A stretch of 64,000 nucleotides of DNA, taken from the NCBI GenBank assembly GCA_001643675.2, contig LSRY02000045.1, positions 682,001 to 746,000 on the forward strand, written 5' to 3'. The translations under genes and the position numbers were made by a program. How positions within the stretch are numbered: position 1 is the first letter of the stretch; every line of letters begins with the position of its first letter. The notes beneath the pieces are model-generated. The model had not been told where the DNA came from. It ran no database searches and worked only from the letters and a program-made list of their open reading frames with translations. The DNA is from Monocercomonoides exilis PA203 (lineage: Eukaryota > Protista > Preaxostyla). Shown piece by piece: positions 18,916 to 64,000 of this stretch.

Positions 18916-21900
18916 ATGACATTGAAGTTGTCAGAAATATTATATTGTGTGTGGATAATAAGTGTGGGGTGCGTGTGCAAGGGTGCTACAAGTGATGGAG
19001 CAGGATTTGTTGAGGAATCAGCGAAAGAAGGAGAATTGGGTTATCTTGAAGGCACATGGAGAGAGAAGGCTCAAAACAACAAAATTGGAGATGGCCATTT
19101 ATTTGACACACATATTGAAGGAAAAGAAGGTGGAGTAGGAGAAGCCTCGAAAGAGGAGAGAATGATGAAGAAATACACAAAACAATGGAGTGAAGGAAGT
19201 GGAGAAATTGGGAAAGTTGAAAAATGGGGTTTTTGTGATGAGTGGAAAATGTGGGGAAAGGAGGGTGTGTGTGGTGGGAGTGGGGTTGAGGGAAGTGTTG
19301 TTGGGGTCAATTCATCACTGAAACTGAATTCATTGGGATTGAGGGAAAAAGGTGGGGAGAGTGTGCTCAGGGCATCGGATGGAAGTTCTGTTGAGGTGAG
19401 TGGCTGTGTGATTGGAGTTTGGAGAGAGACACCCCCCTTTGATTTTTGTGGGAGCTGTGGACTGTTCACCAACATTTCCCTCAGATCATCTTCAACTTCG
19501 TCTTCAACCTCAACTTCAACCTCGACTGAACAGATATTCCCTCCACTTTTCTCTTCAAAAGCAGCGGAAGGAGAGATTCCAGAGAAATGCCACATTTCTG
19601 TTTGTTCATCTCATTTCTCTTCTTTTTGTGTGTCTTCTGCTCCATTCATCACATCGCACTTTGCTTGTCTTTCCCAATTAGAATTCTTCAACATCTCCAC
19701 AAATCCACCGAAAACAACACATCTGGATGAAGGGTTGGGCCAAACATCATTTCTAATGAGTGGATGCACATTTTCATCAGTGTGGGATGTTTATGATGGG
19801 GGCATTGTCCCTTCACTGAACAGCCCCTCATCATCCTTGGCTGCCTCGAACACCTCATTTATCAGATGCTATCGCACTCAGAATGTTGCAATCGGCGGGA
19901 GTGAAGGGAATCCAACGAAACCAGCGAGACAGCAGATAACAGACAATGGGGCAAATTCGTTCACTTGGTGCGAGTGGAATGGGTCAAAAACCACTGGGTC
20001 AGGAACTTCTTATTCAGATGGAACTTCAAATGGTGGAGCAATTTACATGTATAACAAGGCTTCAGGAACACTTTCAGTGAAATTTTGTTCTTTCAACAAC
20101 TGCACTGCATATTATGCTGGGGGAGGTATTATGTGCTATAAAATCAGTTCAATCAAAATAGAAAACAACTCGTTCAATGCATGTACCACAAATAGAGATG
20201 ATGGAGGAGGGATGTATTCTGAATCAATTTCGTCATGTGTCAGGATCAGTGGGTGCGAATTTCAGAAATGCACATCGAAAAATTATGGAGGAGGACTTTA
20301 TCTTCAAACTTTTAATGTTTCTGGATCTTCCTGTATTGGAACAGAAAATGGCAAAGGGGAGAGTGCTTGTGTGTTTGAGTGTTTTTTCACTTCGTGCTCG
20401 CTTACAAATTCTTATGGCGGAGGGATGTATTGTTATGGTGTTCCAGCTGCATTCAAAATGAGGAGCCTCCAATTTATTTCGTGTTCAGCAGTGTCATATG
20501 GCGGAGGGATGAGATTTTATCCATATCAATCAACACCTCCAAGCAACAACATTTATTGTTATTTCTTTTTCTTCCACGATTGCAGTTGCAACGCTTCCAC
20601 TCCATATGGCCACGATGTGTTCTTTTATGATGGAAATAATCTTTTTTCATCGAATAACCCGTTCTATGAATCGTATACAACGAATAGTGATGATAAGAGA
20701 GTGTGTTATGCTGACAGTAATTGGGTGTATCAGCACACACAAAAGAAGGATTGGCTGAAGGAAGGGATGAAGGATCGGTATGTTGGGGTGAGTGGAGATG
20801 ACACAAGCAATCTGTGTGGAATGAGTGAGGCAGCACCGTGCAAGACAGTGGGGCATGCAGTGGGGTCGAGCATGGCGCAGCTGAGCTCGACAATCACAGT
20901 GCTGGGTGGGAGGCATGTGAGCGAAGAGAAGACGATCAATGTTGGGGAAAAGAAGATTTCTGTTGTTGGGAGAGGGAAAACAATGAGTGTGATTGGGACG
21001 AGTGCGCTTTCTACCTCTTCAACAACGCTGTTTAGCATATCTTCTGGTCGACTGGAGGCGGAGCATGTTGGGATCGATCACAACTCGATGAGAAGCTTAT
21101 CGCCGAGTGTGTTTGTGGTGTCACTGGGGAGCGGGACACTTTCGCTGGAGGATGTTTTGATCGACTCTTCGACATCAGGAGGGAGTGGAATGACGAAGTG
21201 TGTGTTTGAAGTGGCACTGAAGCAGCTGAAAATGATTGATGTGGAGATCAAAAATATAAAAATGAGTCAACCACTATTTGCAGAACCATCATCAGCAGGA
21301 TCATCATCAGAAGAAAGTTTGCTGGGGAATTTGACAATTCGAAATGTGAATCGGACAACAGGTGATGGTGTGGTGATGGCAAAGAGCGTGAAGGCAGGAG
21401 AGACATTTGTTGTGTGGAACACAACAATAGAAGGATGTGAGTGTGCGAATGGGAATGGAGGAGGGATAAAGGTTGAGTTGGAGGATTCAACAAGCAAGGT
21501 TCTTATTGGAGATTCAACGTCACATGGCGGAGGGGCAACAACATTTAATCAGTGCAAGTGCAGCGGATGCGGAGGAGGGATATTTCTTTCTCTGACAGAT
21601 GCAGATACGTTGTTTGAGTTGAAAGGAAATTTGATATTTGATGGAAATGAGGTAGAATATGGGAGAAATATGTTCGTTTCTGCATCTGATCTGAACCAGA
21701 GTGTGACAAATGAAACATTTGCCTTCGATTATTCATCAATGATAACTGATGAAAATTTGTTTGTGGGGAGTGATGATTTTCATCAAAAAAAGGATTTGTT
21801 CATGTTCCTCATTCCGTACAGCTCATTTGAGATATTTATCTCATCGAGTGGATTTGATGTGGAACGTTGTGGAAGTGAAGAAGATCCATGCTTCACAATG

Positions 21901-24900
21901 TGGAAAGGGATGGAAAACATGAAAAAGGAAAGTGGAATGAAAACAATTCAAATTGAAGGATCAATTGTTATTCGAGATTCATTCAACATGTCCAATTATC
22001 AGATCAAAAAGAGTGTGAAGATGGGAGAAGAGAATGTGAAAGCAACTTTGAATTTTGAAAAGGCAATTGGAAGTCAACTGGAATATTTCATGGAAAATGA
22101 TATTCATCTTGAATAAATGAATATCCAACTTCAACTGTCAACTGGATTTGACAACTCAGCCAAAACAATTATTTCAAACAGAGCTGGCGAGTTGGTGATT
22201 ACTGGATGTTCATTCCATTCAGAGGCTGAAGTGAACAATGGATTTGATTGTGTATTTGTGGATATGATTGGAGGCAGTGTGGAAATAAGCGATTTGTCGA
22301 TGGAATCGTGCAATGTTGGAAACAGTATTTTTGTCAATCACGATGCTGAACTAACTTGCCATTTTGTGAATGTTCGAGTGGAATCGTTGAATGAAAGCAG
22401 AGAATGTCTTCTTCTGATCAAAGGACCTGAATTAACAACAAAGATAAATGAAGGAGGTGAAGAAATGAGTCTTAACATTGATAATTCATCATTTTCAGGA
22501 GTGAAGAGAAGTGACAATGGAGCAAGCATTTTGGAGTCAAAGAGTGAGAATAAGATTTGTTTGGTTGTGAATTCGAGCAACATCACAGAAGACAAAGCAG
22601 AAATGAGTGAAAAAGGAGGGGCGATATTCTTCACATTGGGTGCATCAGGATCGATGAAGATGATTAAGTCCGAAGTCAGTCAATGCAGCTGCACCAATGG
22701 AAAAGGAGGAGGGGTGTATCTGGCAACAAAGGAAAGAGGAGAATTGAATTTCACATTTGTGGGGATGAAATTCAGTTCAAACACAGCAAGAGTGGGGAAT
22801 GATATTTTCATTGAATGCTTCAACATCACATCTCAGATCAATGAAAGCCAATTTCAGTTTGATCTTCGAGAGAATCATTATTCACGAATTAATGCGATAT
22901 ATGGAAGAGATGAATGTGATTATCCTAGCGATACAGATCTGATTGAGTTTGTGACTATCCATCAGAGCGATACAATTGTTGTGAGCAGTGCGGTTGGGTC
23001 GAATGACAGACAATGTGGAACAAACACACTTCCATGTGATTCAATTGAGCATGGGCTGGTGCATCTGACTTCAGAGCTGATAAGTCAAATAATTGTTGTT
23101 GAAAAGAGTACGATTGATGGAGAGATAAATCTGGAGGAGATGAGTTTGAGTTCGAAGAGCAGGGAAATGTGCAAAGTTGAAGTGAAATCAAACATTGGAA
23201 AAACAAGAGAGACATTGGTGACAACAAGAGAAACAGTCTCGTTGGTGAGAGTGAATTTTGTATTTGATTCGAATTTCGTCTCTTCACACGAATCACTGAT
23301 ATCACCAGAGGGAGGGATTCTTGAGATAATAAATTGCTCATTTGACTCAAAACAATCGGCTGGAGAAGGAAGAATAGAATATGCAAACATTCCATTTCAC
23401 ATTATCAACATGGAAAAAGGAGAATTACAACTTGATTGATGCACAATATCAAATCTCATTCTTCATGAGTCTGCATTGCATCTTTCATCGCTACTTCCAT
23501 CGGTGATTGATTCTTTAACGATTAACAATTCAACAATAGAAACCTCTTTGATAGATATTAATGAATGTGGACAATTAACAATTAAAGATTTCAAAACAGA
23601 AAATATCTCAGTTGAAGGAAATGAAGAATTATTGATATCTTGCCTGTCAATGAAAAAGACAATTCAGTTGACAAATTGCACAATTGGTGGAGTCAGTTCA
23701 AAAACCGCAAAAGGAAAATTGATAAAACTGGAGAATTGCACAGATGTGAAAATGGACAGTTGCATTTTTAATGGAAATTCAAAGGAAAGAAACGAGAAGA
23801 ATTTGAATGAAGGGGAAGAGATGTGCAGATGGTCAGGATCTCTTGTTGATGTTGTAAAGAGTTCTTTAATTATGAAAGACACAACAATCTCGAATTCACC
23901 AGAAGGTGGAATAACAATGAGTGGGGGAAATGTGATAATTGAGATGGGGTTATTTGAGAACAATAATCCATCGATTGAAAAATATCCATCATTGAGAAGG
24001 AATATCATCTGTTCTGTTTCAGGAATATTGGATGCGATGAGTTTGAAAGGAGGAGATGGATTGGAGAGAAATACATCACTTTGGATGTTGAATGAAGGGT
24101 GCAGTTTTGAAGGGATTGTTTCTGAGAGGGATTCATCATTCTTCATTCCAGTTCCGGAGAGTGTGGAAGCAAAAGAAGAGACAGATAGAATGAAATTGAT
24201 ATTCAAAGGAATGCTTCTTGTTCCATGCAATCTGTCATTCTCAGTTGTGAAGAGGAAGGGAGAAGAGAAACAAATTGAACATTATGATTTTGATTCAAAT
24301 GGATTTTTATCGGAAAGAGAAGTTGAAGGAAGTGTTGCAAAAGATCTCATCAGTGGTTGTGGAGATGAAATCGAGGTGAGTGTGCATATTTTGTTTGGGA
24401 ATGAAGAATCTCCTTCATCAACACAGCCATTTATTCTGAAGAATACAAGCGAAGCAAAGACAAATGGAGATGAAAGGGTTGTTGAAGGAGGAAACAAGTC
24501 AGTGCCTTATTGGATTATCATTGTTGTTGTATTTGCAGTTTTGTTTTTGATTGTTTTGATTGTATCTATTGTTGTAACCATTCGATGGAGAAAAGCAAGA
24601 AAGAGAACAAAGATCTGAGAGAAATTGTGAATGACAACATCAGAAAGGATCCGAAGGCGTTTGAGATGGTGACGATGGAGATGTCACCTGAGGAACAATG
24701 GAAAAGTTCAAGAAGAGATTCAAACAGATTCAACAAAACAAAACAAAAAATGAGAATATCTCCGAAAAAAATGGAACATTCTGAATCTTCGGAATATCTT
24801 CTAGCTGAAAGTGGATCAACTGAATACATTCTGGGGCATGATTCTGACAAAATACCAAATTGGGCTTTAGAGAAAGTGGAAGAAGATGAGGATGATGAAG

Positions 24901-25982
24901 AACAAGAAATCAAAAAAAGATCTCCTTCTCCTTCAAAATCTTCAATTTCTTCTTCTGACACAGACTCATCCTTTGTCCGCATGGAGGATATGTGTCCAAC
25001 TACTTCATCAATGTCGAATCTGGTAGATGCAATGGCTTGCTCATCTCCTCATGAAAAGTTAATTGTTGACTTGAGAGATTCGTTGTTCATGCTGCTTCAT
25101 GGAAGGAATAAGACAAAAGAGATGGCAATAGGAACATTGAAGGAAAGAGAGCAGACAGCAGCAGAAGTGCTGCTGGTGGTGGCGAATCTGGCACTCCACT
25201 CGTTTGATGAAATGGAAGTTCCTCTTCAATCTCTTTCCAATTTGAGTCCGCATATTGTGCTGTTCTCCGAACACATGGTGATCTGCATTGTGATGCACTC
25301 AGACTGCTCGTCAGATGATGACTCGGATTCATCGTCGATCTCTTCATTGACAATTGTTTCTTCTTCGTCCAATATTTCATTGATGAGCGAAAGATTCACC
25401 GATTCTCCACCTCCATCATCCGCGTTTGAGGATGATGAAAACGCCAGAAAAGAGTTTTTGAGATGGAAAGCACCAGAGCTGCTGATGAACAAGAAGATGG
25501 GAGCAACGAAGGAGTCGGTTGTGTTTTCGATGGGGATGATGCTGTGGGAGATTCTGACAGTGGAGATTCCGTTTGGGGATTATTCAGCAGAGGGAGCGGG
25601 GCAGAAGATTGTTCGTGGGGAGAGGCCGGAGATGAAGGGAGTGAGGGTGTCTGTGTTTGGGGAGGTGGTGTCGCGGTGCTTGTCGTGGGAGAGGAGCAAG
25701 CGTCCGAGGCTGGGAGAACTGAAGAGAGAGTTTGTTGGAGGATGTGGGGCGAGTGGGATGATGGTGACCGAATCAGATGCGATTGGGATATGCGACAAGG
25801 AGACGAGCAGTGTGGAGGAGGAAGGTGGAAAAGAAGGGATTGGAGAGAATGAGAAAAGGAGTGAGAAAGGGAGTGAGAAGGGGAATAAGAAAAGGAGTGA
25901 GAAAGGGAGTGAGAAAGTGAGTGAGATAGCGAATGGTGCACGAGAGAGAAAAGAGAGGATTGAGCAAACGAACAATGTTTGA
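18916..25982 (+). pseudogene. giant Cys/Gly-rich beta-helix-like surface receptor with a TM helix and a C-terminal kinase-like (pseudokinase) domain, disrupted
   Basis: Signal-like N-terminus, repeated FxxC..GGG/GGAI motifs, CG-x4-PC modules, TM (YWIIIVVVFAVLFLIVLIVSIVVTIRW), then RWKAPE..VFSMGMMLWE..IPF..GERP..CLS..RP. Interrupted by TAA at 22114, TGA at 23437 and a 1-nt frameshift near 24600. Intronless. Confidence 0.88.
25845..25930 (+). repeat. 12-bp coding tandem repeat (GAGAAAGGGAGT-like, EKGS/EKRS x~7)
   Basis: Seen in the sequence and in the translation of the receptor C-terminal tail. Confidence 0.8.
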
Positions 25983-37398: not shown

Positions 37399-39406
37399 GG
37401 GTTATAATTTTATCTCGACCTTTTTTTTTTTATCTTGACCTTTTTTTTTAATTAATCATTAACTTTTCCCACAATTTCATATTTTTTAAGATTTTTAAGT
37501 ATATATATGAATTCAATAGATAAAAATAAATACATTTTGAAACAAACCCAATTTCGCATGGGGGGGGAGATGGGGGGGTTTAGCCCCTTCATTGAACTTC
37601 TGTGTGGAATTGGAGGGTTACATGGGGCATAAAACCTTTAGTTTGTTTAAAATGTTATTTTTCGATTTTTTTTCATTTCATTTCAATTAAAAAAATAAAA
37701 AATTATTATGATCTTAAAAATATTATTAAAAAAATGAAAATATCAACAGAAATAAAATTAAAAGAAGGTAAGAAAAAACTGCAGCGGGCAATGTCTTCGC
37801 GTAAGTACAGGAAGTATCACAGTCGGCTGGAGCGAATGGCTCATATCGTTGTTGATGGAGTTGTTCGTATAACTGATGCTATCAATTCTAAGGAATTCAG
37901 TCGCACTGGAATAAAAAATGCAGTTAGAGCGCTGAGAAAAGGAAGGCTGGTTGGAAAAATTGGCAGACCTGCAGCAGTTGTTGGCGAAAAGGAACAAAGA
38001 GTTTTGGATATTATTCACATTGAAGCAAAGTCTGGAACATGTTTAACTTTGAAAAAAACAAGAGAATTGGTTTGTTAAATTTTTATTTATATGTTTTAAT
38101 CATTTGTTTTTCAGATAGAAAATGTAATAAACGACAACGATGATGAAGACTCACCATTTACAGAAATTTCAATGTCTGCAACTTACGGCTTTGTCAAGCG
38201 TCATCCGGAGCTGAAAACTGGAACGCCGAAGAATCTGGACATTAACAGACTGGCTGTTTCGTGCAGAAGTGTTTTAAAACCCTGGTATAAAACACTCGAC
38301 GAGCTGCACGAAAAATACAATTACAATCCAGCTTTAATTATAAACATTGACGAATCTTCAACGCGCGTTCCCACAGACTCCAAACAGCTTGTAGTGCATA
38401 CAGCAGATACAAAAGCAGGTTTTACGAAAGAACCACCGAGGATGATCAATTCTACATTCGTAGCAGCTGTTGCAGCTGACGGATATGCCTTTCCTTCAGT
38501 CATTTTGTGGCCAAGTGCAAAGCTGCCAGAAGAGCTGAAATGCCTATTATCCCCAACGTTGGAAATTTGGGCAAATGGAAGCGGCTGGATGGATAATGAG
38601 TGCTTTAAAAGGTATGCTCTCACCATTCTTCTGCCTTCCATCATCGAAAGAAGAAAGCGCATGTCACTTGAAAACGAACACATTCTTCTCCTTCTTGACT
38701 CGCATGCATCTCGCGCAGATCCATCGATCTGGCGAGAATTCCAAAAACAACAAGTCGATGTTTTAACCTTCGTGCCACACAGCACACACCTCTGTCAACC
38801 ACTGGACAGAGGAGTGTTTGCTGTGTTTAAATCTGAACTGACAAACAGATTTGAGGCTCCCTCTTCTTCTTCATCTTCCTCCAAACGAGCTGCAATTTCC
38901 GACGTTCTGCCTCAAGCTATCCACACTGCATTATCACCTTCTGTAATTCAGAAAGCTTTTGTCTGCAGCGGTGTTCTGCACAATACTTCTGGGCCAGTTC
39001 TTTTGAAACTGCCCGAATCATCTATTTATCCTCTTCCATCCCGAAGAAATAGATTCAACTTTTATGGAAAAGTGATAACCGACGAAAATCTTTTAGAGAA
39101 ATGGGAAAATCATTTGAAAATGAATATTGAAAGGAAAAATGAAATGGATGAAAAGGAGAAAGATGAAGTGAAGACTGTTGTGGATGAAAAGAAAAAAATA
39201 AAAAGAAGATTTCTTCATGTGAAAAACGATGATTCTGATGAAGAAAAGAAAGATAATGCATTAAATCGAGCTGAAGGAAAAAGGAAAGTTATCAGAAGAA
39301 TTAATTCTGATTTTGTTTTCTTTTAATTATGTTGTTTTTTGAATTTTTTTCACTTCATTTTTTTGGGTCAGAATAAAGAAAAAGGGTCAAGATAAAATAA
39401 TAACCC
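37399..39406 (+). mobile_element. pogo/Fot1-like Tc1-mariner transposon, 2008 bp, TA TSD
   Basis: Left TA|GGGTTATAATTTTATCTCGACC. Right GGTCAAGATAAAATAATAACCC|TA (20/22 match as an inverted repeat). An inner repeat of the TGACC motif occurs at both ends. Confidence 0.93.
37734..39326 (+). CDS. DD35D transposase (DDE_1 family), ~515 aa, one intron (38070-38114)
   Basis: Exon 37734-38069 (includes GRP motif) splices in frame (GT..AG) to 38115-39326. Catalytic motifs NIDES, LLLDSH and QPLD, with 35 residues between the 2nd and 3rd Asp. No internal stops. Confidence 0.92.
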
Positions 39407-43360: not shown

Positions 43361-46300
43361 TCAGTTCTTGCTTGTCTTCGTTTTGGTGTCAGGAATAAGA
43401 AAGTGCGGGAGCTGTTCTCTGTACAAGCGGAGAAACTCGACAAGCCGAATTTCCAGCTGCTTCGTTGCTTTGCGCGGCACTTGGCGCAGCAGATGGGCAA
43501 ACTGTGCAGGTGTAGCAGCAGCTGAGATGATCGGCTTTGGACGCTCGCCTTTGGGAGAAGAGGCCAATGGAGAGGAAGAGGAAGAAGAAGAAGAAGATGA
43601 TGATGATGATGATGAAGGAGAGGATGAAGGGGAGTTTTGAATTCCGACTGGCCTCTGAGGAGAGGAAGCAGGGCTGCGTGGAGAAGATGCAGTCAGCGGC
43701 ATCACAGGGACAACAGTAGCAGCAGCAAGTGCGCGGGAGATGGTGCCAAGTTCAGTCTTCTCCATCAGCTCTGTCTCCAACGCTGACAGAAACGCTGGGA
43801 AGCGGTCGTGGTAGAGTCCCGTTGCCCATGCTTCGCGGAAGAAGCTGATTGGATTAAGATTAAAAAAATAAGTAAGAAAAGAAAAGATAAGAAAAGAAAA
43901 GAAAAGAAAAGAAAAGAAAAGAAAAGAAAAGAAAAGAAAAGAAAAGAAAAGAAAAGAAAAGAAAAGAAAAGAAAAAGAAAAGAAAAGAAAAGAAAAAGAA
44001 AAAAAAAAGAAAAAAAAAGAAAAAGAAAAGAAAAAGAAAAGAAAAGAAAAGAAAAGAAAAGAAAAGAAAGAAAAGAAAGAAAAAGAAAAAGAAAAAGAAA
44101 AGAAAAGAAAAGAAAAGAAAAAGAAAAGAAAAGAAAAGAAAAGAAAAGAAAGAAAGAAAGAAAAGAAAAAGAAAAGAAAAAGAAAAAGAAAAAGAAAAAG
44201 AAAAAGAAAAAGAAAAAGAAAAAGAAAAAGAAAAAGAAAAAGAAAAAGAAAAAGAAAAAGAAAAAGAAAAATATTTTGAAGAAAAGTTAATAAATCATAT
44301 AGAAATTGATAGAATTGTTTGACATTTGAATGCGAATAAGATAAAACAGTTAAATAACAAACACGATAAATACAAAAACAATGAAGATGATAAAAACATA
44401 GGTAAAATAACAAACCTAATCAAATCAGGAATAGCGCCTTCATCGTATCTTGCACAGAGCTTATTTGCGATTGTCTGTGTGAGTCCAATGAGACTGGAAA
44501 GATTGGGTGTCTCGATGATTTCTCTGCCGATGTAGTTCAGACAGGCAATGCGCTGCAGATTGTCTATGCACACACTCACAAAATGGCCGTTGCGGTCAAC
44601 ACACAAATCCCTCTGAAGAATTTCATTTCACAGAAAAAGAAAAAAGAAAAAAGAAAGTTCAAAGTTAATAGTTAAAAATGAAAATTATGTTATGAAAATA
44701 AAAAAAAAATTATAAAATTTATAATATAAATAGATCAAAATAATCCTTTACAATGATTGAAAGCAAAAAATCATCAAAACATACCACATCACTTCTAATC
44801 TTCGCCATTGCCGAGGTCGATCTGTCTGGAATTCTGTTCTTTTCCCTCGCTGAGCTCAGAATCTCTGCCGCCTCCTTTGCCCTCTCCGCCTTCCTAACTT
44901 CTCTCTTCTTCGAGAACCCAGGCAATCTTGACCTGAAGAACACCAAATTCCCTGGCAGATAGCAGTATTCGCTCACTGGGCTCACAAAGCTTGCTGCTCG
45001 GGGCGCGCCCAGCTTCGCCTCTTCGACTGCCTCCTCGTCTTGCGACATGAACTGCGTCTGCTTCCCAATCACAATCCCCTTTGGCCGGATGACCTTCTTC
45101 TTCGCCAGCGCGTCTGCCCCGCTCGACGCAGACAGCGACGAATCCAACGCAGACTGGCTGATCCCGCTGATGCTTCCATTGCCTCCTCCTCCTCCTCCTC
45201 TGCTGCTTCCATTGCCCATGCTCCCTCCATATTCTCCGCCTTCCACCACATTCGTCAGGATCTGCTCTGTGTTGTGGCTCAAATACAACCCCACAAAGCT
45301 GCCACACTCTCTTCCATTGTATCTGTCCAGGCTGTGTGGGAAACGGCACTTGCGAGAGAACTTCGCAATGGGGCCTGCACCCAAAATGAGCGGGTCGTTC
45401 GTCGCCCACTTCTCATCTACGGTGAGCCTGCCGTCGTAAACAATCGAGTTCTCGTTCAGCGCATAGAACAGGTTCGTGTCCACGTCCCGTGCCGCACATG
45501 AAATAAACAGCGAGCACTCGATGTTCACCTGCGGAATCTCTGTTGGCTGTTCCTGCTGCTGCTGCCTCCGGAACAAGTCCATCGCGTGCTGAGGGCCAGA
45601 CGAAGGAGGCGGGGCAGGCGCGTGCGAAGAGCCGTCGTGATAGACACGCCGCGTGTTCCGCACACGTGGTGAGTATTGGAAGATGTCAATCTCTTCTTCT
45701 TCTGCGTCTGCTCCGTCTCTCCCGTCAAACCTCCTCTGTGCCACAGACACTGCCGGCGCACCTTCTTTGCCTTCCTCGTCCTTCGCGCCTTCTTCTCCTC
45801 CTCTTCCCAATGCCCCCATCCCTTGCCCCTCTTTCTTTTTCTTCTTCAGCGGAGTCGGTGGGCGGCAGATCTCATCAATGTCTGTTTCCTTTGGCACCTC
45901 AAACTGCACCCACTTCAGCTGAATACGCCTTGTCACTGGAACAGGTGGCAGATCCATCTGCTCCATCTGCATCTGCTGCTGCTGCTGTGCCACTTCCATC
46001 GCCCTCAAACCTGCTCCCATCCCTCCCATGCTGCCCAATGTCGATGTCAATCCACCAGATGTCAAGTCATTCCCTCCTCCTTCTCCTCCGTCTCTTCGGC
46101 TCGAAAGCAAACCATCCTCCATCTTTCCCATCTCTCCCATGTCGCCTCCATAGCCAGCTGTTCCGCTGAGCATCTTTTCTGCCATTTTCCGCTCGTCTTC
46201 TTCAGGATTCGCTATCTTTTCATACAAACGAGCGAGTTTACTGTATGAATTCTCCAGAGCAGCAATACGCTTTGCATTCTCTTCTTCCTCCTCTTCATTC

Positions 46301-49300
46301 ACAATCTCCCTTTCTGTTGCTCCTTCCTCTTCCTCTTCTTCCTCCTCCTCTTCTTCTTCCACCTCTTCATCTTCCCCAGCTTGCTCTCTTGCCTCCTTCC
46401 TCCTCCTCCTCTCCTCCTGCCTCGCCTTCTTCGCTGCATAATACGCCTCTCTCCTTTCCTCCAGCTTCTTCTCCGCCTGTGCCCTGATCATCCCAATCCT
46501 CTTCTTTATCCTGTTCTGCGCTGCCTCAATCGATTTTAACTTAACCTCCCTTTGCTTCTCAGCCGAAAGCGGAATGGAGTTTGCATACGGGTTGAACCGC
46601 GCTGCCCCCAACGACGAGCCCATCGAAGCATCGCCTCCACAAGCTGCTGCCCACGCCTTTTCAGATTCTGCCCCAACACCATCCAACAGAACACCATGTT
46701 GCTCTGCCAGAAGTGCAGCTGCTTTCGCCCTTCTTCTTTTCGCTCGTGCTCGAAGCATCGCGTCTTCGTCTTCTTCTTCACCACCTTCGTTTTCGACTTC
46801 TTCCATCTCGTCTTCGTCATAATCTCCCCATATGTCGTTCGCCATCTCTTCATCCAAGTTCTCCTCCTCTTCGTCTTCCTCCTCTTCCTCTTCTTGCTCC
46901 CCTCCTTCGCCTTCGCCTTCCCCTTTCTCCTTCTCTCCACCTGCTCCTGCCCCATCTCCTCCAATCCCGCTCCCATTCCCAGTTGCTGTGAAGTACTTCC
47001 TCAGCTCCCCATCCAGCGCATCTTCCACTTCTCCGTCTGGTCCAATGCCATCTTGCGACTTGTCTGCCTCTGCCTGTGCATCTCCTTCATTCTGCTCTCC
47101 ATCCACCTGCGCTGCCTTCTTCTTTACAAACTTCTTCCGCCACGACTTCTTCTTCGGCTTCGGAATCCGGAACTGCATGCGGTCGGTGCCATACTCCTCA
47201 AAATCGGCTGTGATTGGAATTTCGCCAAGCTCTGTGTGCGCACACGTGGCATTCCACCCTTCCACGATCTTCACGCCCGCCGCTGTCAGATAGTCTTCCA
47301 CACGACGCAGCGTCTCTTCCTCGTCGAATGGAGAAACTGGCTTCAAAACAACCCCATTCACTCCTGCTGCACCTGTCGTCACTCCATTTGCAGCTCCTGC
47401 TCCGCTCTGAGTTGCTCCTCCTGTCTGAAGCGTCGACAGCATCTGTGTGTTGAGTGGAGTGGAAGGCACACCCGATGCAGAAGAAGACGACGATGCACCC
47501 ACAGACAAAGTGGCTGATGGCCCATTGGAAGCACCCGATGAAAAGGGAGAAGACAAAACTTCGTGGTCTTCTTCTCCATCGAGTCTTCGCTCTGAGTCCA
47601 GTGCCTGGCTGCGTGGATCAGGTGCCGGTTTGATCAGCATAAGCCTCTTGCCAGGCACACCCGCAGCCAACAAGCCATGCAGCACTGCATATGCTCTGAG
47701 AGAAGAGCCGTAGACAACTCCCGTCTCGTCGTCATCGTCGATCCAGCGGGGCATCCCGGGCTGTGTGGGCGTGTTGATGAACTGGTGGATGCGGAAGGCG
47801 TCTGCCTCAGACGACAAAGTTACCGCCCCGTCCGCCACATCGACGTGGAAGTCGTTTTCTGCTTGTGGTTGAGGCAGGCGTTTAAGTGTCTGATCTTGCA
47901 GCCCCGTGGCAATAACGAGGATGTCATAGGGAACAGATGAGCCATCAGAGAGCAGGATTTCTCTCTTGTCTCTGTCAATGTTCAGCAGCACGCCGGGGAC
48001 AACAGACACAAAGCGCTCCAAACCCAACCCGGACAGAGTGTCTGCGGTGTATGCACATGAGGAGACAGTGTAAAGAGAAGGGGCGGGAGGGCGGTAAGGC
48101 GAAGGGAGGAGGAACAGCGAATGACGTGTGGTGGGTGTTGGAGAGAGGAAAGAAGGCGGGATGGATGTTGGAGGAGGGTAAGGGAGGGTATCGGGGATGA
48201 TGCTCTTTCTTTTGGAAAGGAGAGGAAGGAGAGAAGGATCAGGTGGGGTGATGTATGGAGGAGAGCGGACAATGACGCCTGGCTTGTTCGGCAGCAGCTG
48301 TCCGTTTTTCTCTTCTGCTTTTCCCTTTTCGCTTGTTCTCAATTCCTCTGCACTCTGACTGCTCTTCGGATCCTCTTTCTCTCTCTCCTCTTCTTCTTCT
48401 TTCGGATCCACTTTTGCCGACCACAACGGCGCCAAGGGGACAACTGCCTGCGAACCAGGGATCTTCGCCTTGATTGCCACAAGCGGCGGGACAGGTAGCG
48501 GATGGATCAGCCTGTGCGACGAAAGCGCTCGAGCCTCGTAAAAACGGCGGAGCTGCCACGCTCGCTGCTTCTTCTGAAGGAGGAGGTCGATGTACTCTTC
48601 TGTGTTCTGCTCAACATCTGGCGCGAACAGCGTGGCATCGTCTTGGCAGTCGTCTAATCCACTCCAGTCGATTCCGAATCCATCGTCTTCCATCTCATCC
48701 TCACTATCGCCTTCATTCTCTTCTTCTCCCTCTCTCTCCATTCTCTCTCCCCCGTATCCTTCCTCCCTCTCCCTCTCCCTGTTCTCTCTTCCTCCTTTCC
48801 CTTTCTTCTCTCTCAGCATCTCCTCGCTCCACTGCTTCTCCAGCCCAATCGCCATCTCTGTCGACAGCAGCTCCTTCGCCGGGTTCACATCAAGCGGTGT
48901 TTCTGCCTGGTTTCTGCCCATCTTCCCTTCCAGCCCCTTCTTCGCCCCTTCATACACACTCATCCCCTTCGGAAACGGCTCAGCAAACGGATGATGATGG
49001 AAAGGAGGGGAAGGCACAATCGAAGAGTCCATTGTGGGTAGCCCGTGAGGAGAGACAAGAGTCAAAGAAGAGAAGAATTTTGTAGAGCAGAAAGACAGCT
49101 GCTCTAATACACCCAGCCCTGTGTCTGATGCGCCGACCACGACAATCCTGCCGTTCACCATCGCCCTCCTCTCCAAGCAGCTTCCTCTCCTCATCACACT
49201 CAGCGCGAATCTCGGCTCGCTCCAGCGTGTCGGTGGGAGTGCAGAATGAGCTGGAGGAGGAGGACGAATGTGCTTTGTGGTGGGGTCACCAACAGGGCCC

Positions 49301-52300
49301 AAGGGATCCGGAAACTCCTCCAACCGGTGGATGCGTGCGTATGCATCGTCTAAGGGGATGAAGGAAGGGTTGTCTGTTTCTGCGAGTGGCTGAACAACCT
49401 GCCTGCGGGGCGGGGCAGGTGTGAACAAAGAGAGGATACTTTTGGGCACGTGGCAGCCGCCGAAGCGGTAAGAGCGGAGAAAGAGCATCCGCACCGAAGA
49501 CAGTCTGAATACCTCTCTCAGCACAAACCGCGCGCGCGTGTGGAACAGCGGGTCGAGGGCGAAGTAGACGATGTCTGCGTGGGGCTTTCCCCCCAGCGCT
49601 GTTGTGTCCAGCTCGCCAGGCTTCGGCTGCTCCAAGTCCACATCGTCCAGCTCGGACTCGTGCGAGACGAGCGAAATGAGGTCGAACAGCTTTCGGAGTG
49701 TGGAGACAGATGTGGCTAAGGAAAGAGCAACAAGGCCGACAATCTGCTGTCCGTAGCGTATTTGGTAGAGCCGCGCCTGCTGCCGGATCCAGTCAGAATG
49801 CGCGCGGAGTCGGCTAGTGAGCACATTCTGGATGGATTCTGTGGTTGCTGTGGGAGAAACAATAGAAGAAGAAGAATTTCCTCTGTCGTTTTTGTTTCCT
49901 TTAAGCCCTTTTCCAGCAAGAGCTACTAAGGCTGAGGGGACAGGCACGATTGACAAGCCAGCTGACGTCTGAAGTGAAGGTGTTTCGTGATAGAGTGTGG
50001 GTGCTGATAAAGTGGAATCAACAGAAAGAGAGCTGATAGCAGAAGAGGAAGATGAGTCGGAGGAGTCTTGTTTGATGGCGGGTGGGATGATCTGCTGTTG
50101 GCGCAGGCAGATTGAGAGAAACTCGCGCATTCCAACTTCGTCCTGTTGGGATGAAGAGGAGGCGGAAGAGGAAGAGAAAATGAAAATGGATTTTTGTGGA
50201 TGAGAGAATTAACAAAAACAGAGTTAAAAAAAAAAATAATAATTTGAAAAAAAAAAAGAGAGAAGGAAATACTATTGAAAGGTTTAAGAAAACAGGCAAA
50301 TTAAAAAAAAAGATAAAAATGTTCCAAATTCGCATTAATATCATTCATCATCATCATCATCATAATCAATATCATTGTTATTATTCCTTTTATTACAATC
50401 TCCACCTCAACCTCCCCCTCCGCCAAACCTTCATTCCCTGTATGTATTCATTCAGCTCGTCAAAGTCCTGTTCCCCCACCGGCGACACATTCAGCGGGGC
50501 GCCTTTAAAAGCGTGTTTAGTGACAACATACAGGCTGTGTGGGTAAAGAGAGCGAGGGCGCGGAAACACCTGGACGAAATGGGAGAGAAGGGGAAATTCG
50601 AGCAGAGAAGGGGAAAGAGTGATGAAGCAGTAGAGGTGGCTGGGGAAGTGGTCGAAGACGGCGGAGATAAAGTCGATTGAGCGGTGCTCGAACTCGGGCT
50701 TGAGGCAGTACAATGTGATGCAGACAGCGTTTGGAGCTGGGTTTGGGGTTGGAAATGGGGGTTAAGGAAAAAGTGAAGGTGAAGGTGAAGGAGAAGGTGA
50801 AGGTGAAAGCGGATGTGGATGTGGAATGAAGAATTAAACAAAATGAAAAAAAAGGAAGAAAAAAACAAAAAAGAAAAGAAAATTAAAAATAAAAAAATAA
50901 AAATATTTCGCACACTTCCCAGCTCATCCACGAAATTGTCGTATTCAGACAGATCGAACGACGCCTGCAGAGAAGACACATCCACATTTGATGTCACACA
51001 CATCATCCCAATCGCACGCCCTTCGTACTGAAAATGAATGATTTTTGTTGTGGAAAGGAGGTGGGGAAGGGGGGGGGGGGGAATATAAAAGGAAAAATAA
51101 AATAAATAAATAAATAAAATATTATAAAATATATAAATAAATAAATGTGTATCAAGGAAATTTGTATCATCAAAAAGAAATAATTTTGGAATAAAATAAA
51201 AGAAATAGTTAGAATAAAAGAAAACGGAAATGAAAATGAAAATGAAAATGAAAATGAAAATGAAAAAAAGAAAAAGAAAATAATGAAAAGTTCAGTGAAC
51301 ATTTAGCATAAAAAAGAAAAGAAACAGAAAGAAGAAGAGAATTATCACAAAATAGAAACATTCACACCTCCGCCACAAGCACAATGTCTTTGTCGTTCAT
51401 CATTTCAATCGACTTAGCAATGAAATAATCTCCTCCTTTCTCTCCGTTCACAGCTGTCGATAAATTCACGTTCTGTTCGTTGAATATCGGAATTAAATCG
51501 TCGTTATCTTTAAATCAGTCAACAATAGCAATAGTTTAAATAAAAGTTTAATGAGTGAAGGAAAAAAAAAACAAATACAACAATAATAATAATATAAACT
51601 GAAAAAAATTTTATATCAAAAATTCAAAGCCAAACCTTCGACAGTTGCTTTTCTTATCATCAATTCAGGAACAAAATCAAAGCGATGGCAAAAAAATACT
51701 TTGCATCGAGATGCAAAGCTATCGTCTGTATTACATCTTATTTCTCTGAAAGTTGAAGTGAGCCACGGAAGCAACGACAAATATGGAACACCATCTGGAG
51801 GACAAAATAAAAATACTTGGTTGAAGTCCGGAAGTGATACAAATAATGATCGAAGAATTGAAACAAGAATCTGCATTTCAAGATAATATCATAAAAATCA
51901 CAAATAACATTCAATTAAACGAATAAAGCAATTAAGATTAAATTGCATGCGTCGTCATCAGTGGATGGAATTGAAAGGAAATTTTTTTGAAGAAAAGCAT
52001 CGTCCTCTAAAAATGGCGATCTATTAAACAAATTACAAGATGCAAATGTTAACCACAAAGAATCTTGTGCCTGCATTTTATAAAAAGTTATTTTATGGAA
52101 AACAATTTTTCAAAATAATTACACAACCGTTATTGTTACTCCAAAATGAGTCATAAGCCATGCTGGCCAAGTGCACATCATTGATGGATTATATTCTACA
52201 GCATTGTTAGGATAATCTGAGAATGTTGCAAATCCAACAGGATTCCCTCCTACAAGTGCAACGGCTGACATTGGATTTCCAGTTCTATTTATTGATTTAA

Positions 52301-59495: not shown

Positions 59496-62400
59496 ATGGT
59501 TATGTTGCTATCAGGAATATTATATTGTGTGTGGATAATTTGTGTGGGGTGCGTGTGCAAGGGTGCTGCAAGTGATGGGGCAGGATTTGTTGAGGAATCA
59601 GCGAAAGAAGGAGAATTGGATTATTCTGAAGGCACATGGTCAGAGAAGGCTCAAAACAACAAAATTGGAGATGACATTTTATTTGACACACATGTTGAAG
59701 GAAAAGAAGGTGGAGTGAGAGAGACCTTGAAAGAGGAGAGAATGATAAAGAAATTCACAAAACAAAGGAATGGGGGAAGTGGAGAGATTGGGAAAGTTGA
59801 AAAATGGGGTTTTTGTGATGAGTGGAAAATGTGGGGAAAAGTGGGTGTGTGTGGTGGGAGTGGGGTTGAGGGAAGTGTTGTTGGGATCAATTCATCACTG
59901 AAACTGAATTCATTGGGATTGAGGGAAAGAGGTGGGGAGAGTGTGCTCAGGGCATCGGATGGAAGTTTTGTTGAGGTGAGCGGATGTGTGATTGGAGTTG
60001 AGAGAGAGACACCCCCCTTTGATTTGTGTGGGAGCTGTGGATTGTTCACCAACATTTCCCTCAGATCGTCTTCAACTTCGTCTTCAACCTCGACTGAACA
60101 GATATTTCCTCCACTTTTCTCTTCAAAAGCAGTGGATGGAGAGATTTCAGAGAAATGTCATGTTTGTGTTTATTCTTCTCATTTCTCATCTTTTTGTGTG
60201 TCTTCAGCCCCATTCTTCACATCGCACTTTGTATCCCTCTCTTATTTGACCTTCTTCAACATCTCCACAAATCCACAGAAAACAAGACAACTGGGTGAAG
60301 GGCTGGGTCAAAGAGTGTTTCTGATGATTGGGTGCACATTTTCATCAGTGTGGGATGTTTATGATGGGTTCATTGTCCCCTCACTGAACAGCCCCTTATC
60401 TTCATTGGCTGCCTCGAACACCTCGTTTGTCGGATGCTATCGCTCTCAGAATGTTGCAGTCAGCGGGAGCGAGGGGAATCCATCGAAACCAGGGAGACAG
60501 AAGATTACAGAAAATATGGAGAATTCATTTTCCTGGTGTGAATGGAATGGGTCAAAAACCACTGGAACAAGTATTTCTGTTTCAGATGGAATATCGAGTG
60601 GAGGGGCGATTTGCATGCATTACAAGGCATCGGGAACACTTTCAGTGAAATTTTGTTCGTTCAACGACTGCACTGCATATGCTTATGGTGGAGGGATTAT
60701 GTGCGATTCAATCAATTCAGTCAAGATTGAGAACAACTCATTCAATGCATGTACCGCAAAACATTATTATGGAGGAGGAATATTTGCTGAATCAATTTCG
60801 TCATGTGTAAGGATCAGTGGTTGCGAGTTCCAGAAATGCAAAGCGAGTGGCTCAGGAGGAGGCCTTTATCTATATAATTTTAATGTTTCTGGATCTGACT
60901 GTATTGAAACAGAAAGTGGAAAAGGTGAGAGTGCTTGTGTGTTTGAATGTTTCTTCACATCATGCTCTCTGACAAACCAATATGGCGGAGGGATGTATTG
61001 CTATGGTGTTCCGGCTGCATTCAAAATGAGGAGCATTCAGTTCATTTCGTGCAATGCGACATCATATGGCGGAGGATTGTATTTTAATCCAAATCGATCA
61101 ATACCTCCCAGCAACAACATTTATTTCTATTTCTTCTTCTTCAATGATTGCAGTTGCAACGCTTCCACTCCATATGGCTACGATGTGTATTTTTACGATG
61201 GAAACAATCTCTTCTCATCGAATAACCCATTCTATAAATCGTATACAACGAATACAAATGAGAAGAGAGTGTGCCGTTATTATAAATCTGGAAGTTGGTA
61301 TTATCAGCATACAGAAAAGAAGGATTGGCTGAATGATGGAAAGTTATTATTTGTTGGAGAGAATGGAAATGATTCGAATGAATTGTGTGGAATGAATGAG
61401 ACAAAGCCTTGTCAAACAATTGGGCATTGCATGAATAAATGCAATGATGTTGTTAGTTTCGGAATTTCAGTGCTAGGTGGGAAGCATGTGAGCGAAGGGA
61501 CGACAATCAGTGTTGGGGAAAAGAAGATTTCAGTTGTTGGGAGAGGGAAGGCAGTGAGTGTGATTGGGACAAGTGCGCTTTCTTCGCCTGCAACTACTCT
61601 GTTCAGCATATCTACTGGTCAACTGGAGGTGGGGCATGTGGGGATCGACCACAACGCAACAAGAAGCCCATCGCCGAGTGTGTTTGTGGTGTCACTGGGG
61701 AGCGGGACTCTTTTGCTGGAGGATGTGGTGCTCAACTCTTCAACATCAGGAGGGAGTGTTATATCAGCATCTGTGTTTGAAGTGGCGCTGAAGCAATTGA
61801 AGACGATTGATGTGGAGATTGAAAATATAAAAATGAGTCAGCCACTATTTGCAGAACCATCATCAGCAGGATCTTCATCAGGAGAAAGTGTTTTGGCGAA
61901 TGTGACAATTCGGAATGTGAATCGGATAGGAGGAGATGGAGTGGTTTTGGCAAAGAGTGTGAGGGGAGGGGAGACATTTGTGGTGTGGAACACAACAATG
62001 GAAGGGTTTGAGTGTGTGAATGGGAATGGAGGGGGGATAAAGGTTGAGTTGGAAGCGCCTTCAAGCAAAACTCGGATTGGAACATCAACATCGCACAGCG
62101 GAGGAACAACAAAATTCAACAAAACGAAGTGCAGTGGATATGGAGGAGGGGTGATGCTATGGCTAGCAGATAATTCATTTGATTTTGCGATATCATCAGT
62201 GAGTTTTGTTGGTTGCAGTGCAACATCGGGAGGGAAAGATGTGTTTGTGAATGGGAGCAGGTTGGTGAGTGGAACAATAACAACCACAAAGCTGAATTTC
62301 TCACAAAATGTTTCTATTTATGATGAGCTGATGGGATATGACCGGAATGAGGGAGAGATGGGAATATTCACATTGAATGTGTTTTTGGATGCATTTTCAG

Positions 62401-64000
62401 GAGCAGCACATGTGGGGAAAGCGGTGAATGGGAATGGAGGATATGACTGGTGGTTTTGTGGGTTTGGTTATTTTCCATGCAAAACGATCGCGTTTGCTTC
62501 ACAGAACAGATTCAGTTCGTTAAAGAAGAATATTGCGTTGGATTCAGGGTTTGAGCTGGGAGAAGTTGTGTCGATGGCAGGGTCATATGAATGGGAGGTG
62601 TATTGTGGGATTAACAAGACGAATGTGAATGTGAGAGTGCCGAGTGGAATGACATCTTCGTGTTTGATAAATGTTGAGAGTGCAAGCTCCATTAAGAACA
62701 TTGGGTTCCAAATTCCATTTTCGTTATCGAGTGCAACATCACTCATTGGTTTGACCAGCTCATCACTCACACTCACAGACTGCTCAGTTGCTCATTCATC
62801 AGAGAGCACATCGAGTGTAGCCTTTGGATACAGCATTGTGAATGCGCAGAGTGGGAGTCTGAAAATGGAACGATTTGTGATTGGTGGAGAACTTGTGTTT
62901 GGAGCTCATTCAGCGATTGAATTTTCTGAAGGAATGGCGAGTGTGATTTGTTCAGGATGCAATGTCAGTGGAGTCAAAAGGAATGAGGGAGATGGAGGAT
63001 GGATGAAGGGGACAGTTGGAGGGAGTGGAACGTTGACAATTGATGGATGCAATGTGAATGGGTGCAGTTGTGTTGGTGGAAAAGGAGGAGGAATATATGT
63101 TGGATTGAAGGGAAATGGGAAAGCGGTTGTGAATGGGACGAGTGTGATTGATGGGAATAAGGCAGAGAATAATGGAGGGAGAGGAGGGAGAGGAGGAGGG
63201 ATGTTTGTATTGATGGAGAGTGGAGGATGTGGATTGACAATTGGGCAGAATGTTGAGTTTTCGAAAGTGAATGGGAATGTGGCCTCATATGGGAAGGATG
63301 TGTTTGTTGATTGTGGGAGTGGAGTGTTTTTGGAGTCAAAAGTGAATACCAGTTCATTTGCATTTTTTGACACAAACACCATTCCATCAGATGTATTGAA
63401 ACTGAGTGGGAGTGAAAATGGGAAAGAAAGTGGAGTGATTCCACTGCTTGTGTATTTGTGCACAATGGGAACAAAAGGGATTGTTGATGGGAGTGGAGGA
63501 AATGGGAAGGACCACAACCATTGTGGATTTGAGGCATTCAGGTGTTTGACAGTTGATTATTGTGCGAACTCAAGATTGAGTGAAAGTTCAAAAGAAATAG
63601 AAGTTGTTTCATCTTCGTCAATAACCAAGGAAATCACAGTACCATCATTTGGTGTGATAATTTCAGGCAGAATAACATCATCATCAGAAGGAGAGAGGAT
63701 GGGAGTGAATGTGAGTGATGGAGGATCAGACACACAAGATTGGCTTGTTGGATGTTCGAGTTCACTGACAATGAGGAGACTTTCATTTGTTGTGAAAGGT
63801 CAGTTGAATCCAAGGAGAAGTGCATTCATTCATTCAACATCATCAACACTCAGTGTGACGAATTGTTCAGTCTCATTTGAGAGTGGGGCATTGACTGATG
63901 GAAAGATAGGATACAGCATCATTGACATGACAGGAGGGAATCTGATTGTTGATGGATTTGTGATGGAAAGTGGAGTGACACTGACAATGAATGGGAAATC
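59496..64000 (+). CDS. giant beta-helix-like surface receptor, paralog of 18916-25982, open to the window edge (~1500 codons, 3'-partial)
   Basis: ATG at 59496 (MVMLLSGILYCVWIICVGCVCKG). The ORF track lists no stop-terminated ORF in this frame and the parts translated by hand are open. Same GGG/FxxC and CG-x-PC motifs as copy 1. Confidence 0.9.
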   Translation, partial: MVMLLSGILYCVWIICVGCVCKGAASDGAGFVEESAKEGELDYSEGTWSEKAQNNKIGDDILFDTHVEGKEGGVRETLKEERMIKKFTKQRNGGSGEIGKVEKWGFCDEWKMWGKVGVCGGSGVEGSVVGINSSLKLNSLGLRERGGESVLRASDGSFVEVSGCVIGVERETPPFDLCGSCGLFTNISLRSSSTSSSTSTEQIFPPLFSSKAVDGEISEKCHVCVYSSHFSSFCVSSAPFFTSHFVSLSYLTFFNISTNPQKTRQLGEGLGQRVFLMIGCTFSSVWDVYDGFIVPSLNSPLSSLAASNTSFVGCYRSQNVAVSGSEGNPSKPGRQKITENMENSFSWCEWNGSKTTGTSISVSDGISSGGAICMHYKASGTLSVKFCSFNDCTAYAYGGGIMCDSINSVKIENNSFNACTAKHYYGGGIFAESISSCVRISGCEFQKCKASGSGGGLYLYNFNVSGSDCIETESGKGESACVFECFFTSCSLTNQYGGGMYCYGVPAAFKMRSIQFISCNATSYGGGLYFNPNRSIPPSNNIYFYFFFFNDCSCNASTPYGYDVYFYDGNNLFSSNNPFYKSYTTNTNEKRVCRYYKSGSWYYQHTEKKDWLNDGKLLFVGENGNDSNELCGMNETKPCQTIGHCMNKCNDVVSFGISVLGGKHVSEGTTISVGEKKISVVGRGKAVSVIGTSALSSPATTLFSISTGQLEVGHVGIDHNATRSPSPSVFVVSLGSGTLLLEDVVLNSSTSGGSVISASVFEVALKQLKTIDVEIENIKMSQPLFAEPSSAGSSSGESVLANVTIRNVNRIGGDGVVLAKSVRGGETFVVWNTTMEGFECVNGNGGGIKVELEAPSSKTRIGTSTSHSGGTTKFNKTKCSGYGGGVMLWLADNSFDFAISSVSFVGCSATSGGKDVFVNGSRLVSGTITTTKLNFSQNVSIYDELMGYDRNEGEMGIFTLNVFLDAFSGAAHVGKAVNGNGGYDWWFCGFGYFPCKTIAFASQNRFSSLKKNIALDSGFELGEVVSMAGSYEWEVYCGINKTNVNVRVPSGMTSSCLINVESASSIKNIGFQIPFSLSSATSLIGLTSSSLTLTDCSVAHSSESTSSVAFGYSIVNAQSGSLKMERFVIGGELVFGAHSAIEFSEGMASVICSGCNVSGVKRNEGDGGWMKGTVGGSGTLTIDGCNVNGCSCVGGKGGGIYVGLKGNGKAVVNGTSVIDGNKAENNGGRGGRGGGMFVLMESGGCGLTIGQNVEFSKVNGNVASYGKDVFVDCGSGVFLESKVNTSSFAFFDTNTIPSDVLKLSGSENGKESGVIPLLVYLCTMGTKGIVDGSGGNGKDHNHCGFEAFRCLTVDYCANSRLSESSKEIEVVSSSSITKEITVPSFGVIISGRITSSSEGERMGVNVSDGGSDTQDWLVGCSSSLTMRRLSFVVKGQLNPRRSAFIHSTSSTLSVTNCSVSFESGALTDGKIGYSIIDMTGGNLIVDGFVMESGVTLTMNGK

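Follow-up and report, generated by a model that had tools for sequence, protein, structure and literature searches.

Monocercomonoides exilis is a mitochondrion-less flagellate that lives as a commensal of the gut lumen. Here we analyse a stretch of 64,000 nucleotides of its genome (strain PA203, contig LSRY02000045.1, positions 682,001 to 746,000 of the forward strand), referred to as the window, in which one domain is encoded twice. The original prediction, made from the letters of the window alone, described this domain as hypervariable loops on a conserved beta-helix scaffold, coupled to an intracellular kinase-like domain, and proposed that it belongs to a diversified recognition or antigenic-variation system. 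We found that the copies represent one domain in two paralogs of the receptor-like (pseudo)kinase family of M. exilis, the largest gene family of the species, and that variability within the domain is concentrated at regularly spaced positions, predicted to form a strip. The features of the two copies are as follows (positions are those of the window; aa, amino acids; ORF, open reading frame; TM, transmembrane).

18916-25982, + strand: copy 1, whole span (ORF reading and paralog alignment)
About 18916-18984, + strand: signal peptide of copy 1
18916-22116, + strand: first open segment of copy 1, 1066 aa, with signal peptide, N-terminal module and beta-helix, closed by an in-frame TAA (ORF and alignment)
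19891-20757, + strand: beta-helix domain of copy 1 with the hypervariable strip, counterpart of copy-2 aa 322-612
22114-22116, + strand: in-frame TAA of copy 1, Leu in the paralogs (collinear, gap-free paralog alignment)
23437-23439, + strand: in-frame TGA of copy 1, Arg or Gly in the paralogs (collinear, gap-free paralog alignment)
24508-24582, + strand: TM helix of copy 1, followed by the RWRK stop-transfer motif of the family
24583-24620, + strand: frameshift zone of copy 1, from TM helix to cytoplasmic domain (the open frames overlap at 24510-24618)
24600-25982, + strand: kinase-like domain of copy 1, cytoplasmic and probably a pseudokinase (matched by Pfam PK_Tyr_Ser-Thr in the C-lobe only, about 25440-25730)
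59496-64000, + strand: copy 2, open from its ATG to the end of the window
60459-61331, + strand: beta-helix domain of copy 2 with the hypervariable strip, aa 322-612

Over their first ~890 residues the proteins share about 80% identity, and beyond that point the protein alignment runs into different modules. The GG[GA] anchors of the coils begin at 20032, 20119, 20203, 20287, 20416 and 20500 in copy 1, and at 60600, 60687, 60771, 60855, 60984 and 61068 in copy 2. Every framework stretch and every block of differences that the original prediction had listed for the pair is present in the protein alignment. In the genome, copy 2 belongs to an open frame of 3786 aa, which extends past the end of the window.

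Copy 1 is interrupted. Its reading frame runs from 18916 to 24618, with a TAA (22114) and a TGA (23437) interrupting it; after the TM segment the frame shifts to an open frame of 490 codons (24510-25982) which contains the kinase-like domain. Because the paralog alignments are collinear and gap-free, both stops are nonsense substitutions, and introns or an alternative genetic code were ruled out on the same grounds. The frameshift, which adjoins an A-rich run, could be a homopolymer error of long-read sequencing. With two nonsense codons and a frameshift, copy 1 is either a pseudogene or the source of a truncated product of 1066 aa, the segment which is annotated as a protein of that length in the public proteome (P0003). 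At best, it provides such a truncated product or acts as a donor for gene conversion.

The 82.3 Mb assembly (101 contigs) was searched for the variable domain, which gave at least 138 scored matches, 61-100% identical, among 1794 first-look candidates. A word-indexed protein search returned 91 matches, all but two of which are M. exilis proteins, annotated as "uncharacterized protein MONOS_..." or as "putative protein tyrosine and serine/threonine kinase". Protein tyrosine kinases have been described as the largest gene family of M. exilis, with 332 genes, 320 of them tyrosine kinase-like (TKL), and an overlap of this family with "unclassified repeats" was stated for the published assembly (PMC8767320, PMC6759080). 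Neither of these two papers mentions the ectodomain of the kinase family, and a full-text literature search for Monocercomonoides together with pseudokinase, polymorphic membrane protein, beta-helix, hypervariable or receptor kinase found no paper combining them. The family is published only as TKL genes, and its beta-helix and hypervariable strip are absent from the searched texts.

The variable region was taken from 78 loci, of which 73 aligned copies remained once three copies with stop codons and two exact duplicates had been removed. The region aligns gap-free around the invariant anchors in these 73 non-identical copies, and its variability is tied to six phases within each 28-residue coil, namely -3, -2, -1, +4, +6 and +7 counted from the first G of GG[GA], at which entropy is 2-3 bits, against under 1 bit for the scaffold. 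Mean entropy is 2.3, 2.0 and 2.5 bits at phases -3, -2 and -1, drops to 0.0 at phases 0 to +2, and then takes values of 0.7 at +3, 1.9 at +4, 0.5 at +5, 2.5 at +6, 1.9 at +7 and 0.2-1.3 from +8 to +20. The observed variance of the phase means was reached by none of 10,000 random anchor sets. The pair of copies in the window behaves in the same way: within aa 355-540 they differ at 22 of 36 motif-phase sites and at 22 of the remaining 150 (odds ratio 9.1, Fisher p = 5e-8). The periodic clustering of differences that had been proposed from these two copies is therefore seen across all 73 in the per-site entropies, variation not being evenly spread. For each coil, 55-64 distinct six-residue words occur among the 73 copies, 71 of which carry a unique 30-residue signature.

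The predicted fold of the ectodomain, a right-handed parallel beta-helix, is supported by structural modelling, as had been proposed. An AlphaFold2 (AF2) model, based on a 71-sequence family alignment, has a predicted local distance difference test score (pLDDT) of 75-94 at copy-2 aa 322-612, a region that consists of nearly all beta strands. An exhaustive VIA-align search with this model gave Z scores of 14-18.4 over 220-268 aligned residues (root-mean-square deviation 3.2-4.5 Å) to right-handed parallel beta-helix proteins, including glycosidases, lyases, epimerases, phage tailspikes, the PfbA adhesin, an IgA1 protease and the Vag8 autotransporter. Foldseek returned no significant match for the ectodomain model in the PDB, the top rows being all beta-solenoids, and a search of PDB sequences with the ectodomain profile found nothing meaningful.

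The coil has a near-invariant core made up of GG[GA], hydrophobic residues that point inwards, Cys, an Asn turn and the motif F-x-x-C/N. As a rule for repeats of polymorphic membrane proteins (PMPs, or Pmps in chlamydiae) we used GGA[ILV], 14-18 residues and FxxN, once per beta-helix coil (PMC11166332). In the M. exilis domain GG[GA][ILM] is invariant in six coils and is followed after 14-16 residues by F-x-x-C/N, the second motif being F-[NQT]-x-C and not the canonical FxxN. The window proteins gave no Pfam match to Chlam_PMP (PF02415) at E <= 0.1 and no NCBIfam match to the POMP repeat (TIGR01376) at E <= 1. An exhaustive search with a profile of the family alignment collected 2045 proteins at E <= 1e-3, among which P0167, P0170 and P0182, encoded on large and presumably bacterial contigs, were matched in as many as 16 stretches (E 1e-36 to 1e-43). 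These three proteins carry PF02415 at E 1e-84 to 1e-117. In hhalign GGA falls on GGA and F..N.A on F..N.A, in the right register but weakly (E 0.0016). The relation to PMP repeats that had been suggested thus finds support in this profile link, and the coils appear to be PMP-like through transitive homology. The protein itself is not an autotransporter, since its C-terminus is a single TM helix with a cytoplasmic domain and not an outer-membrane barrel.

Chlamydial Pmps resemble the family in several respects: they are multigene proteins with a long right-handed beta-helix, in which GG[AG][ILMV] and a three-residue PB1 strand are followed after 14-16 residues by an F-x-x-N-like motif and a short T3 turn before the next GG, and their variability lies mostly in T3 and T1. 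They differ in that they end in an autotransporter barrel, whereas the M. exilis proteins have the TM helix and kinase-like tail of a eukaryotic type I protein, and in copy number, as there are 9-21 chlamydial Pmps and hundreds of members in the family. The coil profile also matched 15-21 stretches in P0159, P0164 and P0179 of the oxymonad Streblomastix strix, and 17-19 stretches in the giant M. exilis proteins P0102 and P0114 (7,750-7,940 aa). PMP-like coils therefore seem to be widespread in oxymonads, beyond the receptor family.

The PMP register allows the variable phases to be placed on the helix. In chlamydial Pmps, GGA ends turn T3 and precedes the three-residue PB1, T1 occupies repeat positions 6-9, and FxxN indicates where PB3 passes into T3, variability being found mostly in T3 and sometimes in T1 (PMC11166332). 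By this register, phases -3 to -1 of the M. exilis coil would correspond to T3, phase +4 to the outward residue of PB1, and phases +6 and +7 to T1, and the conserved hydrophobic or Cys residues at +3 and +5 would be the inward residues of PB1. DSSP assignment of the AF2 model agrees, with a loop before GGG, a strand directly after it and an Asn-Asn turn further on. The variable residues of 6-7 stacked coils should then form one continuous strip along the PB1 face of the modelled helix. In pectate-lyase-type helices, the PB1/T3 region is the substrate site (PMC10992409).

The residues found in the strip are far from a random sample. At the 23 most variable sites Tyr accounts for 20-21% of residues, Ser for 13%, Asn for 12.7% and Asp for 7.3%, and Leu, Ile, Met, Pro and Lys are strongly depleted. 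The Tyr, Ser, Asn and Asp enrichment noticed in the window pair is borne out here, most clearly for Tyr, which ranks in the top three at 16 of the 23 sites and for which only 2.7% would be expected from the composition of four-fold sites, or 6.9% from intergenic composition. Moreover, the products of transitions from Tyr codons (His and Cys) are rare and those of transversions (Asn and Asp) are common, despite a kappa of about 1.9-2.0. This composition argues for a selected, restricted alphabet. Such a restricted alphabet is seen at protein-binding surfaces.

Family members, about 2,000-4,500 aa long, are type I membrane proteins in which a PMP-like right-handed beta-helix ectodomain precedes one TM helix and a kinase-like tail that is highly conserved and apparently dead. 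For over 40 annotated members, the ectodomain spans about 1,500-2,200 aa, the single TM helix is followed by RWRK, and the cytoplasmic part has about 400-430 aa. Among 14 collinear proteins of one subfamily (~2,300 aa), conservation is highest by a wide margin in the cytoplasmic part, where mean column entropy is 0.25-0.48 bits. Their ectodomain varies along its whole length, and only aa ~350-600 mixes many invariant with many highly variable columns. The tail matches Pfam PF07714 at profile positions 162-257 only, corresponding to the C-lobe (E 1.3e-10), and among solved structures in the PDB its best relatives are C-lobes, those of the pseudokinases MLKL and ILK and those of TKL kinases. A manual reading of the consensus of 34 tails found the Gly-rich loop (GxGxxG), HRD and DFG absent at the expected places, and the tail does not show the full set of features of a TKL kinase domain (Gly-rich loop, VAIK Lys, HRD Asp and DFG Asp). 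Its AF2 model was unusable (pLDDT 44). The intracellular domain that had been proposed is present, as is the TM helix before it, but its kinase likeness is restricted to a profile match in the C-lobe, and the tail is probably a non-catalytic pseudokinase. At the other end of the proteins, at least two alternative N-terminal modules occur upstream of a conserved FSSFCVSSAPF junction (upstream of aa 223; window 59496-60160 compared with L011, L017, L018, L039 and others). The linker of one module is Ser/Thr-rich, as in the window copies, and that of the other is Gly/Arg/Glu-rich.

Selection was studied through the ratio of non-synonymous to synonymous change (dN/dS, or omega), estimated on 32 phylogenetically independent sister pairs, or 30 when the pairs with window copies were left out. 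By the Nei-Gojobori method (NG86) omega is 0.31 overall and 0.23 (confidence interval, CI, 0.20-0.25) for the scaffold of aa 355-540, with a scaffold range of 0.21-0.30; values of 0.2-0.3 indicate purifying selection on the scaffold. Sites picked by entropy and tested in the other half of the data gave NG86 omega values of 1.42 (1.03-1.92) and 1.28 (0.93-1.80), and a pairwise codon-model likelihood in which the motif class shares the time scale of the scaffold gave 1.73 (likelihood ratio test 60 versus omega = 1). Relative to synonymous change, the variable sites evolve 4-6 times faster than the scaffold does, with a rate that is roughly neutral or a little higher. Ratios above 1 at low divergence, obtained when coil windows were binned by local synonymous divergence, were not relied on, as they are subject to regression-to-mean bias.

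The paralogs also bear marks of recombination. The nearest paralog switches between successive 150-nt windows, and the four-gamete test fails for about 70% of pairs of informative third-position sites; a PHI-like neighbour-incompatibility test was not significant (p = 0.11), its signal being saturated at this share of incompatible pairs. Copies L016 and L029 are 98.2% identical, and all 20 of their differing codons, ten synonymous differences included, lie in aa 474-537, as would be left by a conversion tract of ~190 nt from a diverged donor. The omega of about 10 in this pair was rejected as a sign of positive selection, since it stems from that single tract. Similarly, the differences between L037 and L060 lie mainly within aa 373-496, L051 and L059 share an identical tract of 721 nt across the variable domain at 90% overall identity, and L001 and L046 share 139 identical nucleotides at 79.5% overall identity. 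Copies that share the word of one coil share that of the neighbouring coil only 30-44% of the time. These alignments show that short tracts of gene conversion carry coils from one paralog to another, truncated copies included.

Truncated copies make up about a third of those sampled. They are limited to aa ~223 to ~700-800, and many share one short hydrophobic tail, followed by a stop, at their end; in L015, L016, L017, L019, L020, L022, L023, L025 and L030 similarity to the full-length genes is lost at about aa 790-800. The common breakpoint and tail suggest amplification of one truncated unit. The window's own contig and contigs C71, C80 and C53 hold most of the truncated copies, which lie in near-perfect inverted duplications of at least 3.2-3.8 kb with arms 99.2-99.97% identical. 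Inverted pairs are many on C42, C71, C80 and C53, and include L007/L008 (C71:59248-68062), L013/L014 (C42:481597-490191), L003/L004 (C42:468108-477880) and L016/L029 (C42:512365-530381). Such pairs may be real palindromes or, the exact ones included, fold-back artefacts in the assembly of Oxford Nanopore (ONT) reads. Scaffold omega is 0.26 in truncated copies and 0.27 in full-length genes. The truncated copies could be expressed as kinase-less products, act as conversion donors, or be recent duplicates homogenised by conversion.

We consider a germline-encoded binding repertoire, diversified by recombination within a family of receptor-like (pseudo)kinases, to be the best explanation of these data, with a probability of roughly 60%. 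We favour it because the variable phases fall on one face by register, their alphabet is of the binding type, nearly every copy has its own signature, the signalling tail is conserved, and conversion shuffles the coils. According to this explanation, the six phases (T3, outward PB1 and T1) would line up as a single strip on the PB1 face, where beta-helix proteins usually bind their ligands, and the paralogs would constitute an inherited set of binding specificities that recombination keeps diversifying. The likely ligands would be extracellular, such as glycans or bacterial or host gut surfaces, and each receptor would signal via its conserved, probably non-catalytic, kinase-like scaffold. A stronger proposal, possible but tentative and in our judgement short of an even chance, is that of an innate combinatorial recognition system, in which hundreds of PMP-like receptors would differ almost only in their Tyr-rich strip, exchanged coil by coil by conversion with truncated palindromic copies as donors.

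Several observations weigh against a binding repertoire. The variable residues are periodic, as had been foreseen, but their location on a single face is predicted from the repeat register and DSSP. The ectodomain is also variable, in a diffuse manner, at aa ~1000-1650, the strip not being its sole diversified part. A Tyr two residues before GGA is found in the bacterial PMP repeat as well, in the hhalign alignment, and part of the Tyr bias may be structural. Furthermore, dN/dS above 1 is not established at the variable sites: the 30 sites defined a priori by the motif have an NG86 omega of 0.92 (CI 0.76-1.12), a motif class given its own rate or changed codon frequencies yields 0.55-1.12 with no support for omega > 1, and pN at the variable sites levels off near 0.45 when local synonymous divergence is above about 0.3. 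Because these sites are saturated, positive selection is unproven. Of the selection pattern that had been put forward as a check, the gap between variable sites (omega about 1, or 0.55-1.7 depending on the method) and scaffold (0.2-0.3) holds, but an excess over 1 depends on the model and was not demonstrated. Relaxed constraint only, with the exposed turn residues of a structural or adhesive beta-helix drifting and having no role in recognition, would account for an omega indistinguishable from 1 under several treatments, and it would fit the high variability of T1 and T3 in chlamydial Pmps (PMC11166332) and the many copies that are truncated or broken. Drift does not readily explain why Tyr is enriched 3-7 fold, why aliphatics and Pro are almost excluded, or why Asn and Asp are preferred to His and Cys, which transitions can reach; in addition, 70 of 73 sampled copies have no stop codon in the domain, and truncated copies keep their scaffold omega of 0.26. 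We regard relaxed constraint alone as unlikely.

The large family and its unique surface signatures could also point to antigenic variation or immune evasion, in which one or few members are expressed and silent truncated donors supply new variants, as for VSG, vls and msp2. Conversion tracts spanning one to few coils would suit such a system, as would the many truncated copies that hold exactly the variable domain in repeated inverted units. However, every full-length member has a conserved cytoplasmic domain of signalling type, which is unexpected for a pure coat protein, M. exilis inhabits the gut lumen as a commensal, and no expression site or evidence of switching was seen in the genome sequence. 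We find antigenic variation improbable, and less likely than a germline recognition repertoire. An origin of the diversity as a by-product of repeats or assembly, through transposon-borne or mis-assembled fragments, pseudogene decay or ONT errors, is largely refuted and very improbable. Sequencing errors would not lock to six phases of a 28-residue repeat, the differences are codon-phase specific in frames that stay open over 450-900 codons, and the scaffold is under purifying selection. What speaks for a by-product is the overlap of the family with the "unclassified repeats" of the published assembly, the near-perfect inverted duplications with truncated copies, and the A-rich run next to the frameshift of copy 1.

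Two other ORFs were observed in the window. A DDE_1 transposase ORF (E 2e-14) at 38172-39323 (+ strand) places a DNA transposon between the two receptor genes. An open frame of 1803 aa at 44722-50130 (- strand) has 54-55% G+C in a neighbourhood of 25-43% G+C, and gave no Pfam match.

In its logic, the M. exilis family is closest to the leucine-rich repeat (LRR) receptor kinases and receptor-like proteins of plants, and in its scaffold to PMP-type beta-helices. Plant LRR receptor-like kinases, receptor-like proteins and nucleotide-binding LRR receptors (NLRs) are germline families of hundreds of solenoid receptors with hypervariable exposed repeat positions, which diversify by duplication and unequal exchange or gene conversion, and in which kinase, pseudokinase and kinase-less forms coexist. 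The M. exilis family shares with them the germline set of solenoids, the hypervariable exposed positions and the kinase-less truncated forms, and differs in having a beta-helix scaffold, in belonging to a metamonad protist and in a tail that appears to be catalytically dead family-wide. The variable lymphocyte receptors (VLRs) of lampreys bind through variable residues rich in Tyr, Ser, Asn and Asp on one solenoid face; these are LRR proteins, assembled somatically from cassettes in lymphocytes. In M. exilis, by contrast, diversity is in the germline, the fold is a beta-helix, and the genome sequence gives no evidence of somatic rearrangement. The VLR analogy made in the original prediction is thus apt as a functional likeness, but does not extend to the scaffold or to somatic assembly. 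Among protists, the transmembrane kinases (TMKs) of Entamoeba histolytica are described as a large family of type I receptor kinases and pseudokinases with repeat-rich ectodomains, many of them truncated (PMC2880585); on that description they resemble the M. exilis family as a large protist type I set in which only some copies are full-length. The TMK ectodomain is built of Cys-rich CXXC repeats, whereas that of M. exilis consists of PMP-like beta-helix coils, and no phase-locked hypervariable strip in TMKs was described in the searched texts.

If the strip binds, M. exilis, the first eukaryote known to lack mitochondria, would have a diversified receptor repertoire as its largest gene family, and the beta-helix would represent a third solenoid solution for repertoire-type recognition, beside the LRRs of plants and those of lampreys. 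The 28-residue coil with its six designable positions may also serve as a natural binder scaffold. Were recognition indeed combinatorial, a bacterivorous gut protist could discriminate changing microbial or host glycans, and the family would be a protist counterpart of plant LRR immune receptors built on another solenoid fold. These findings raise questions on how a gut protist senses its prey, its host and its neighbours.

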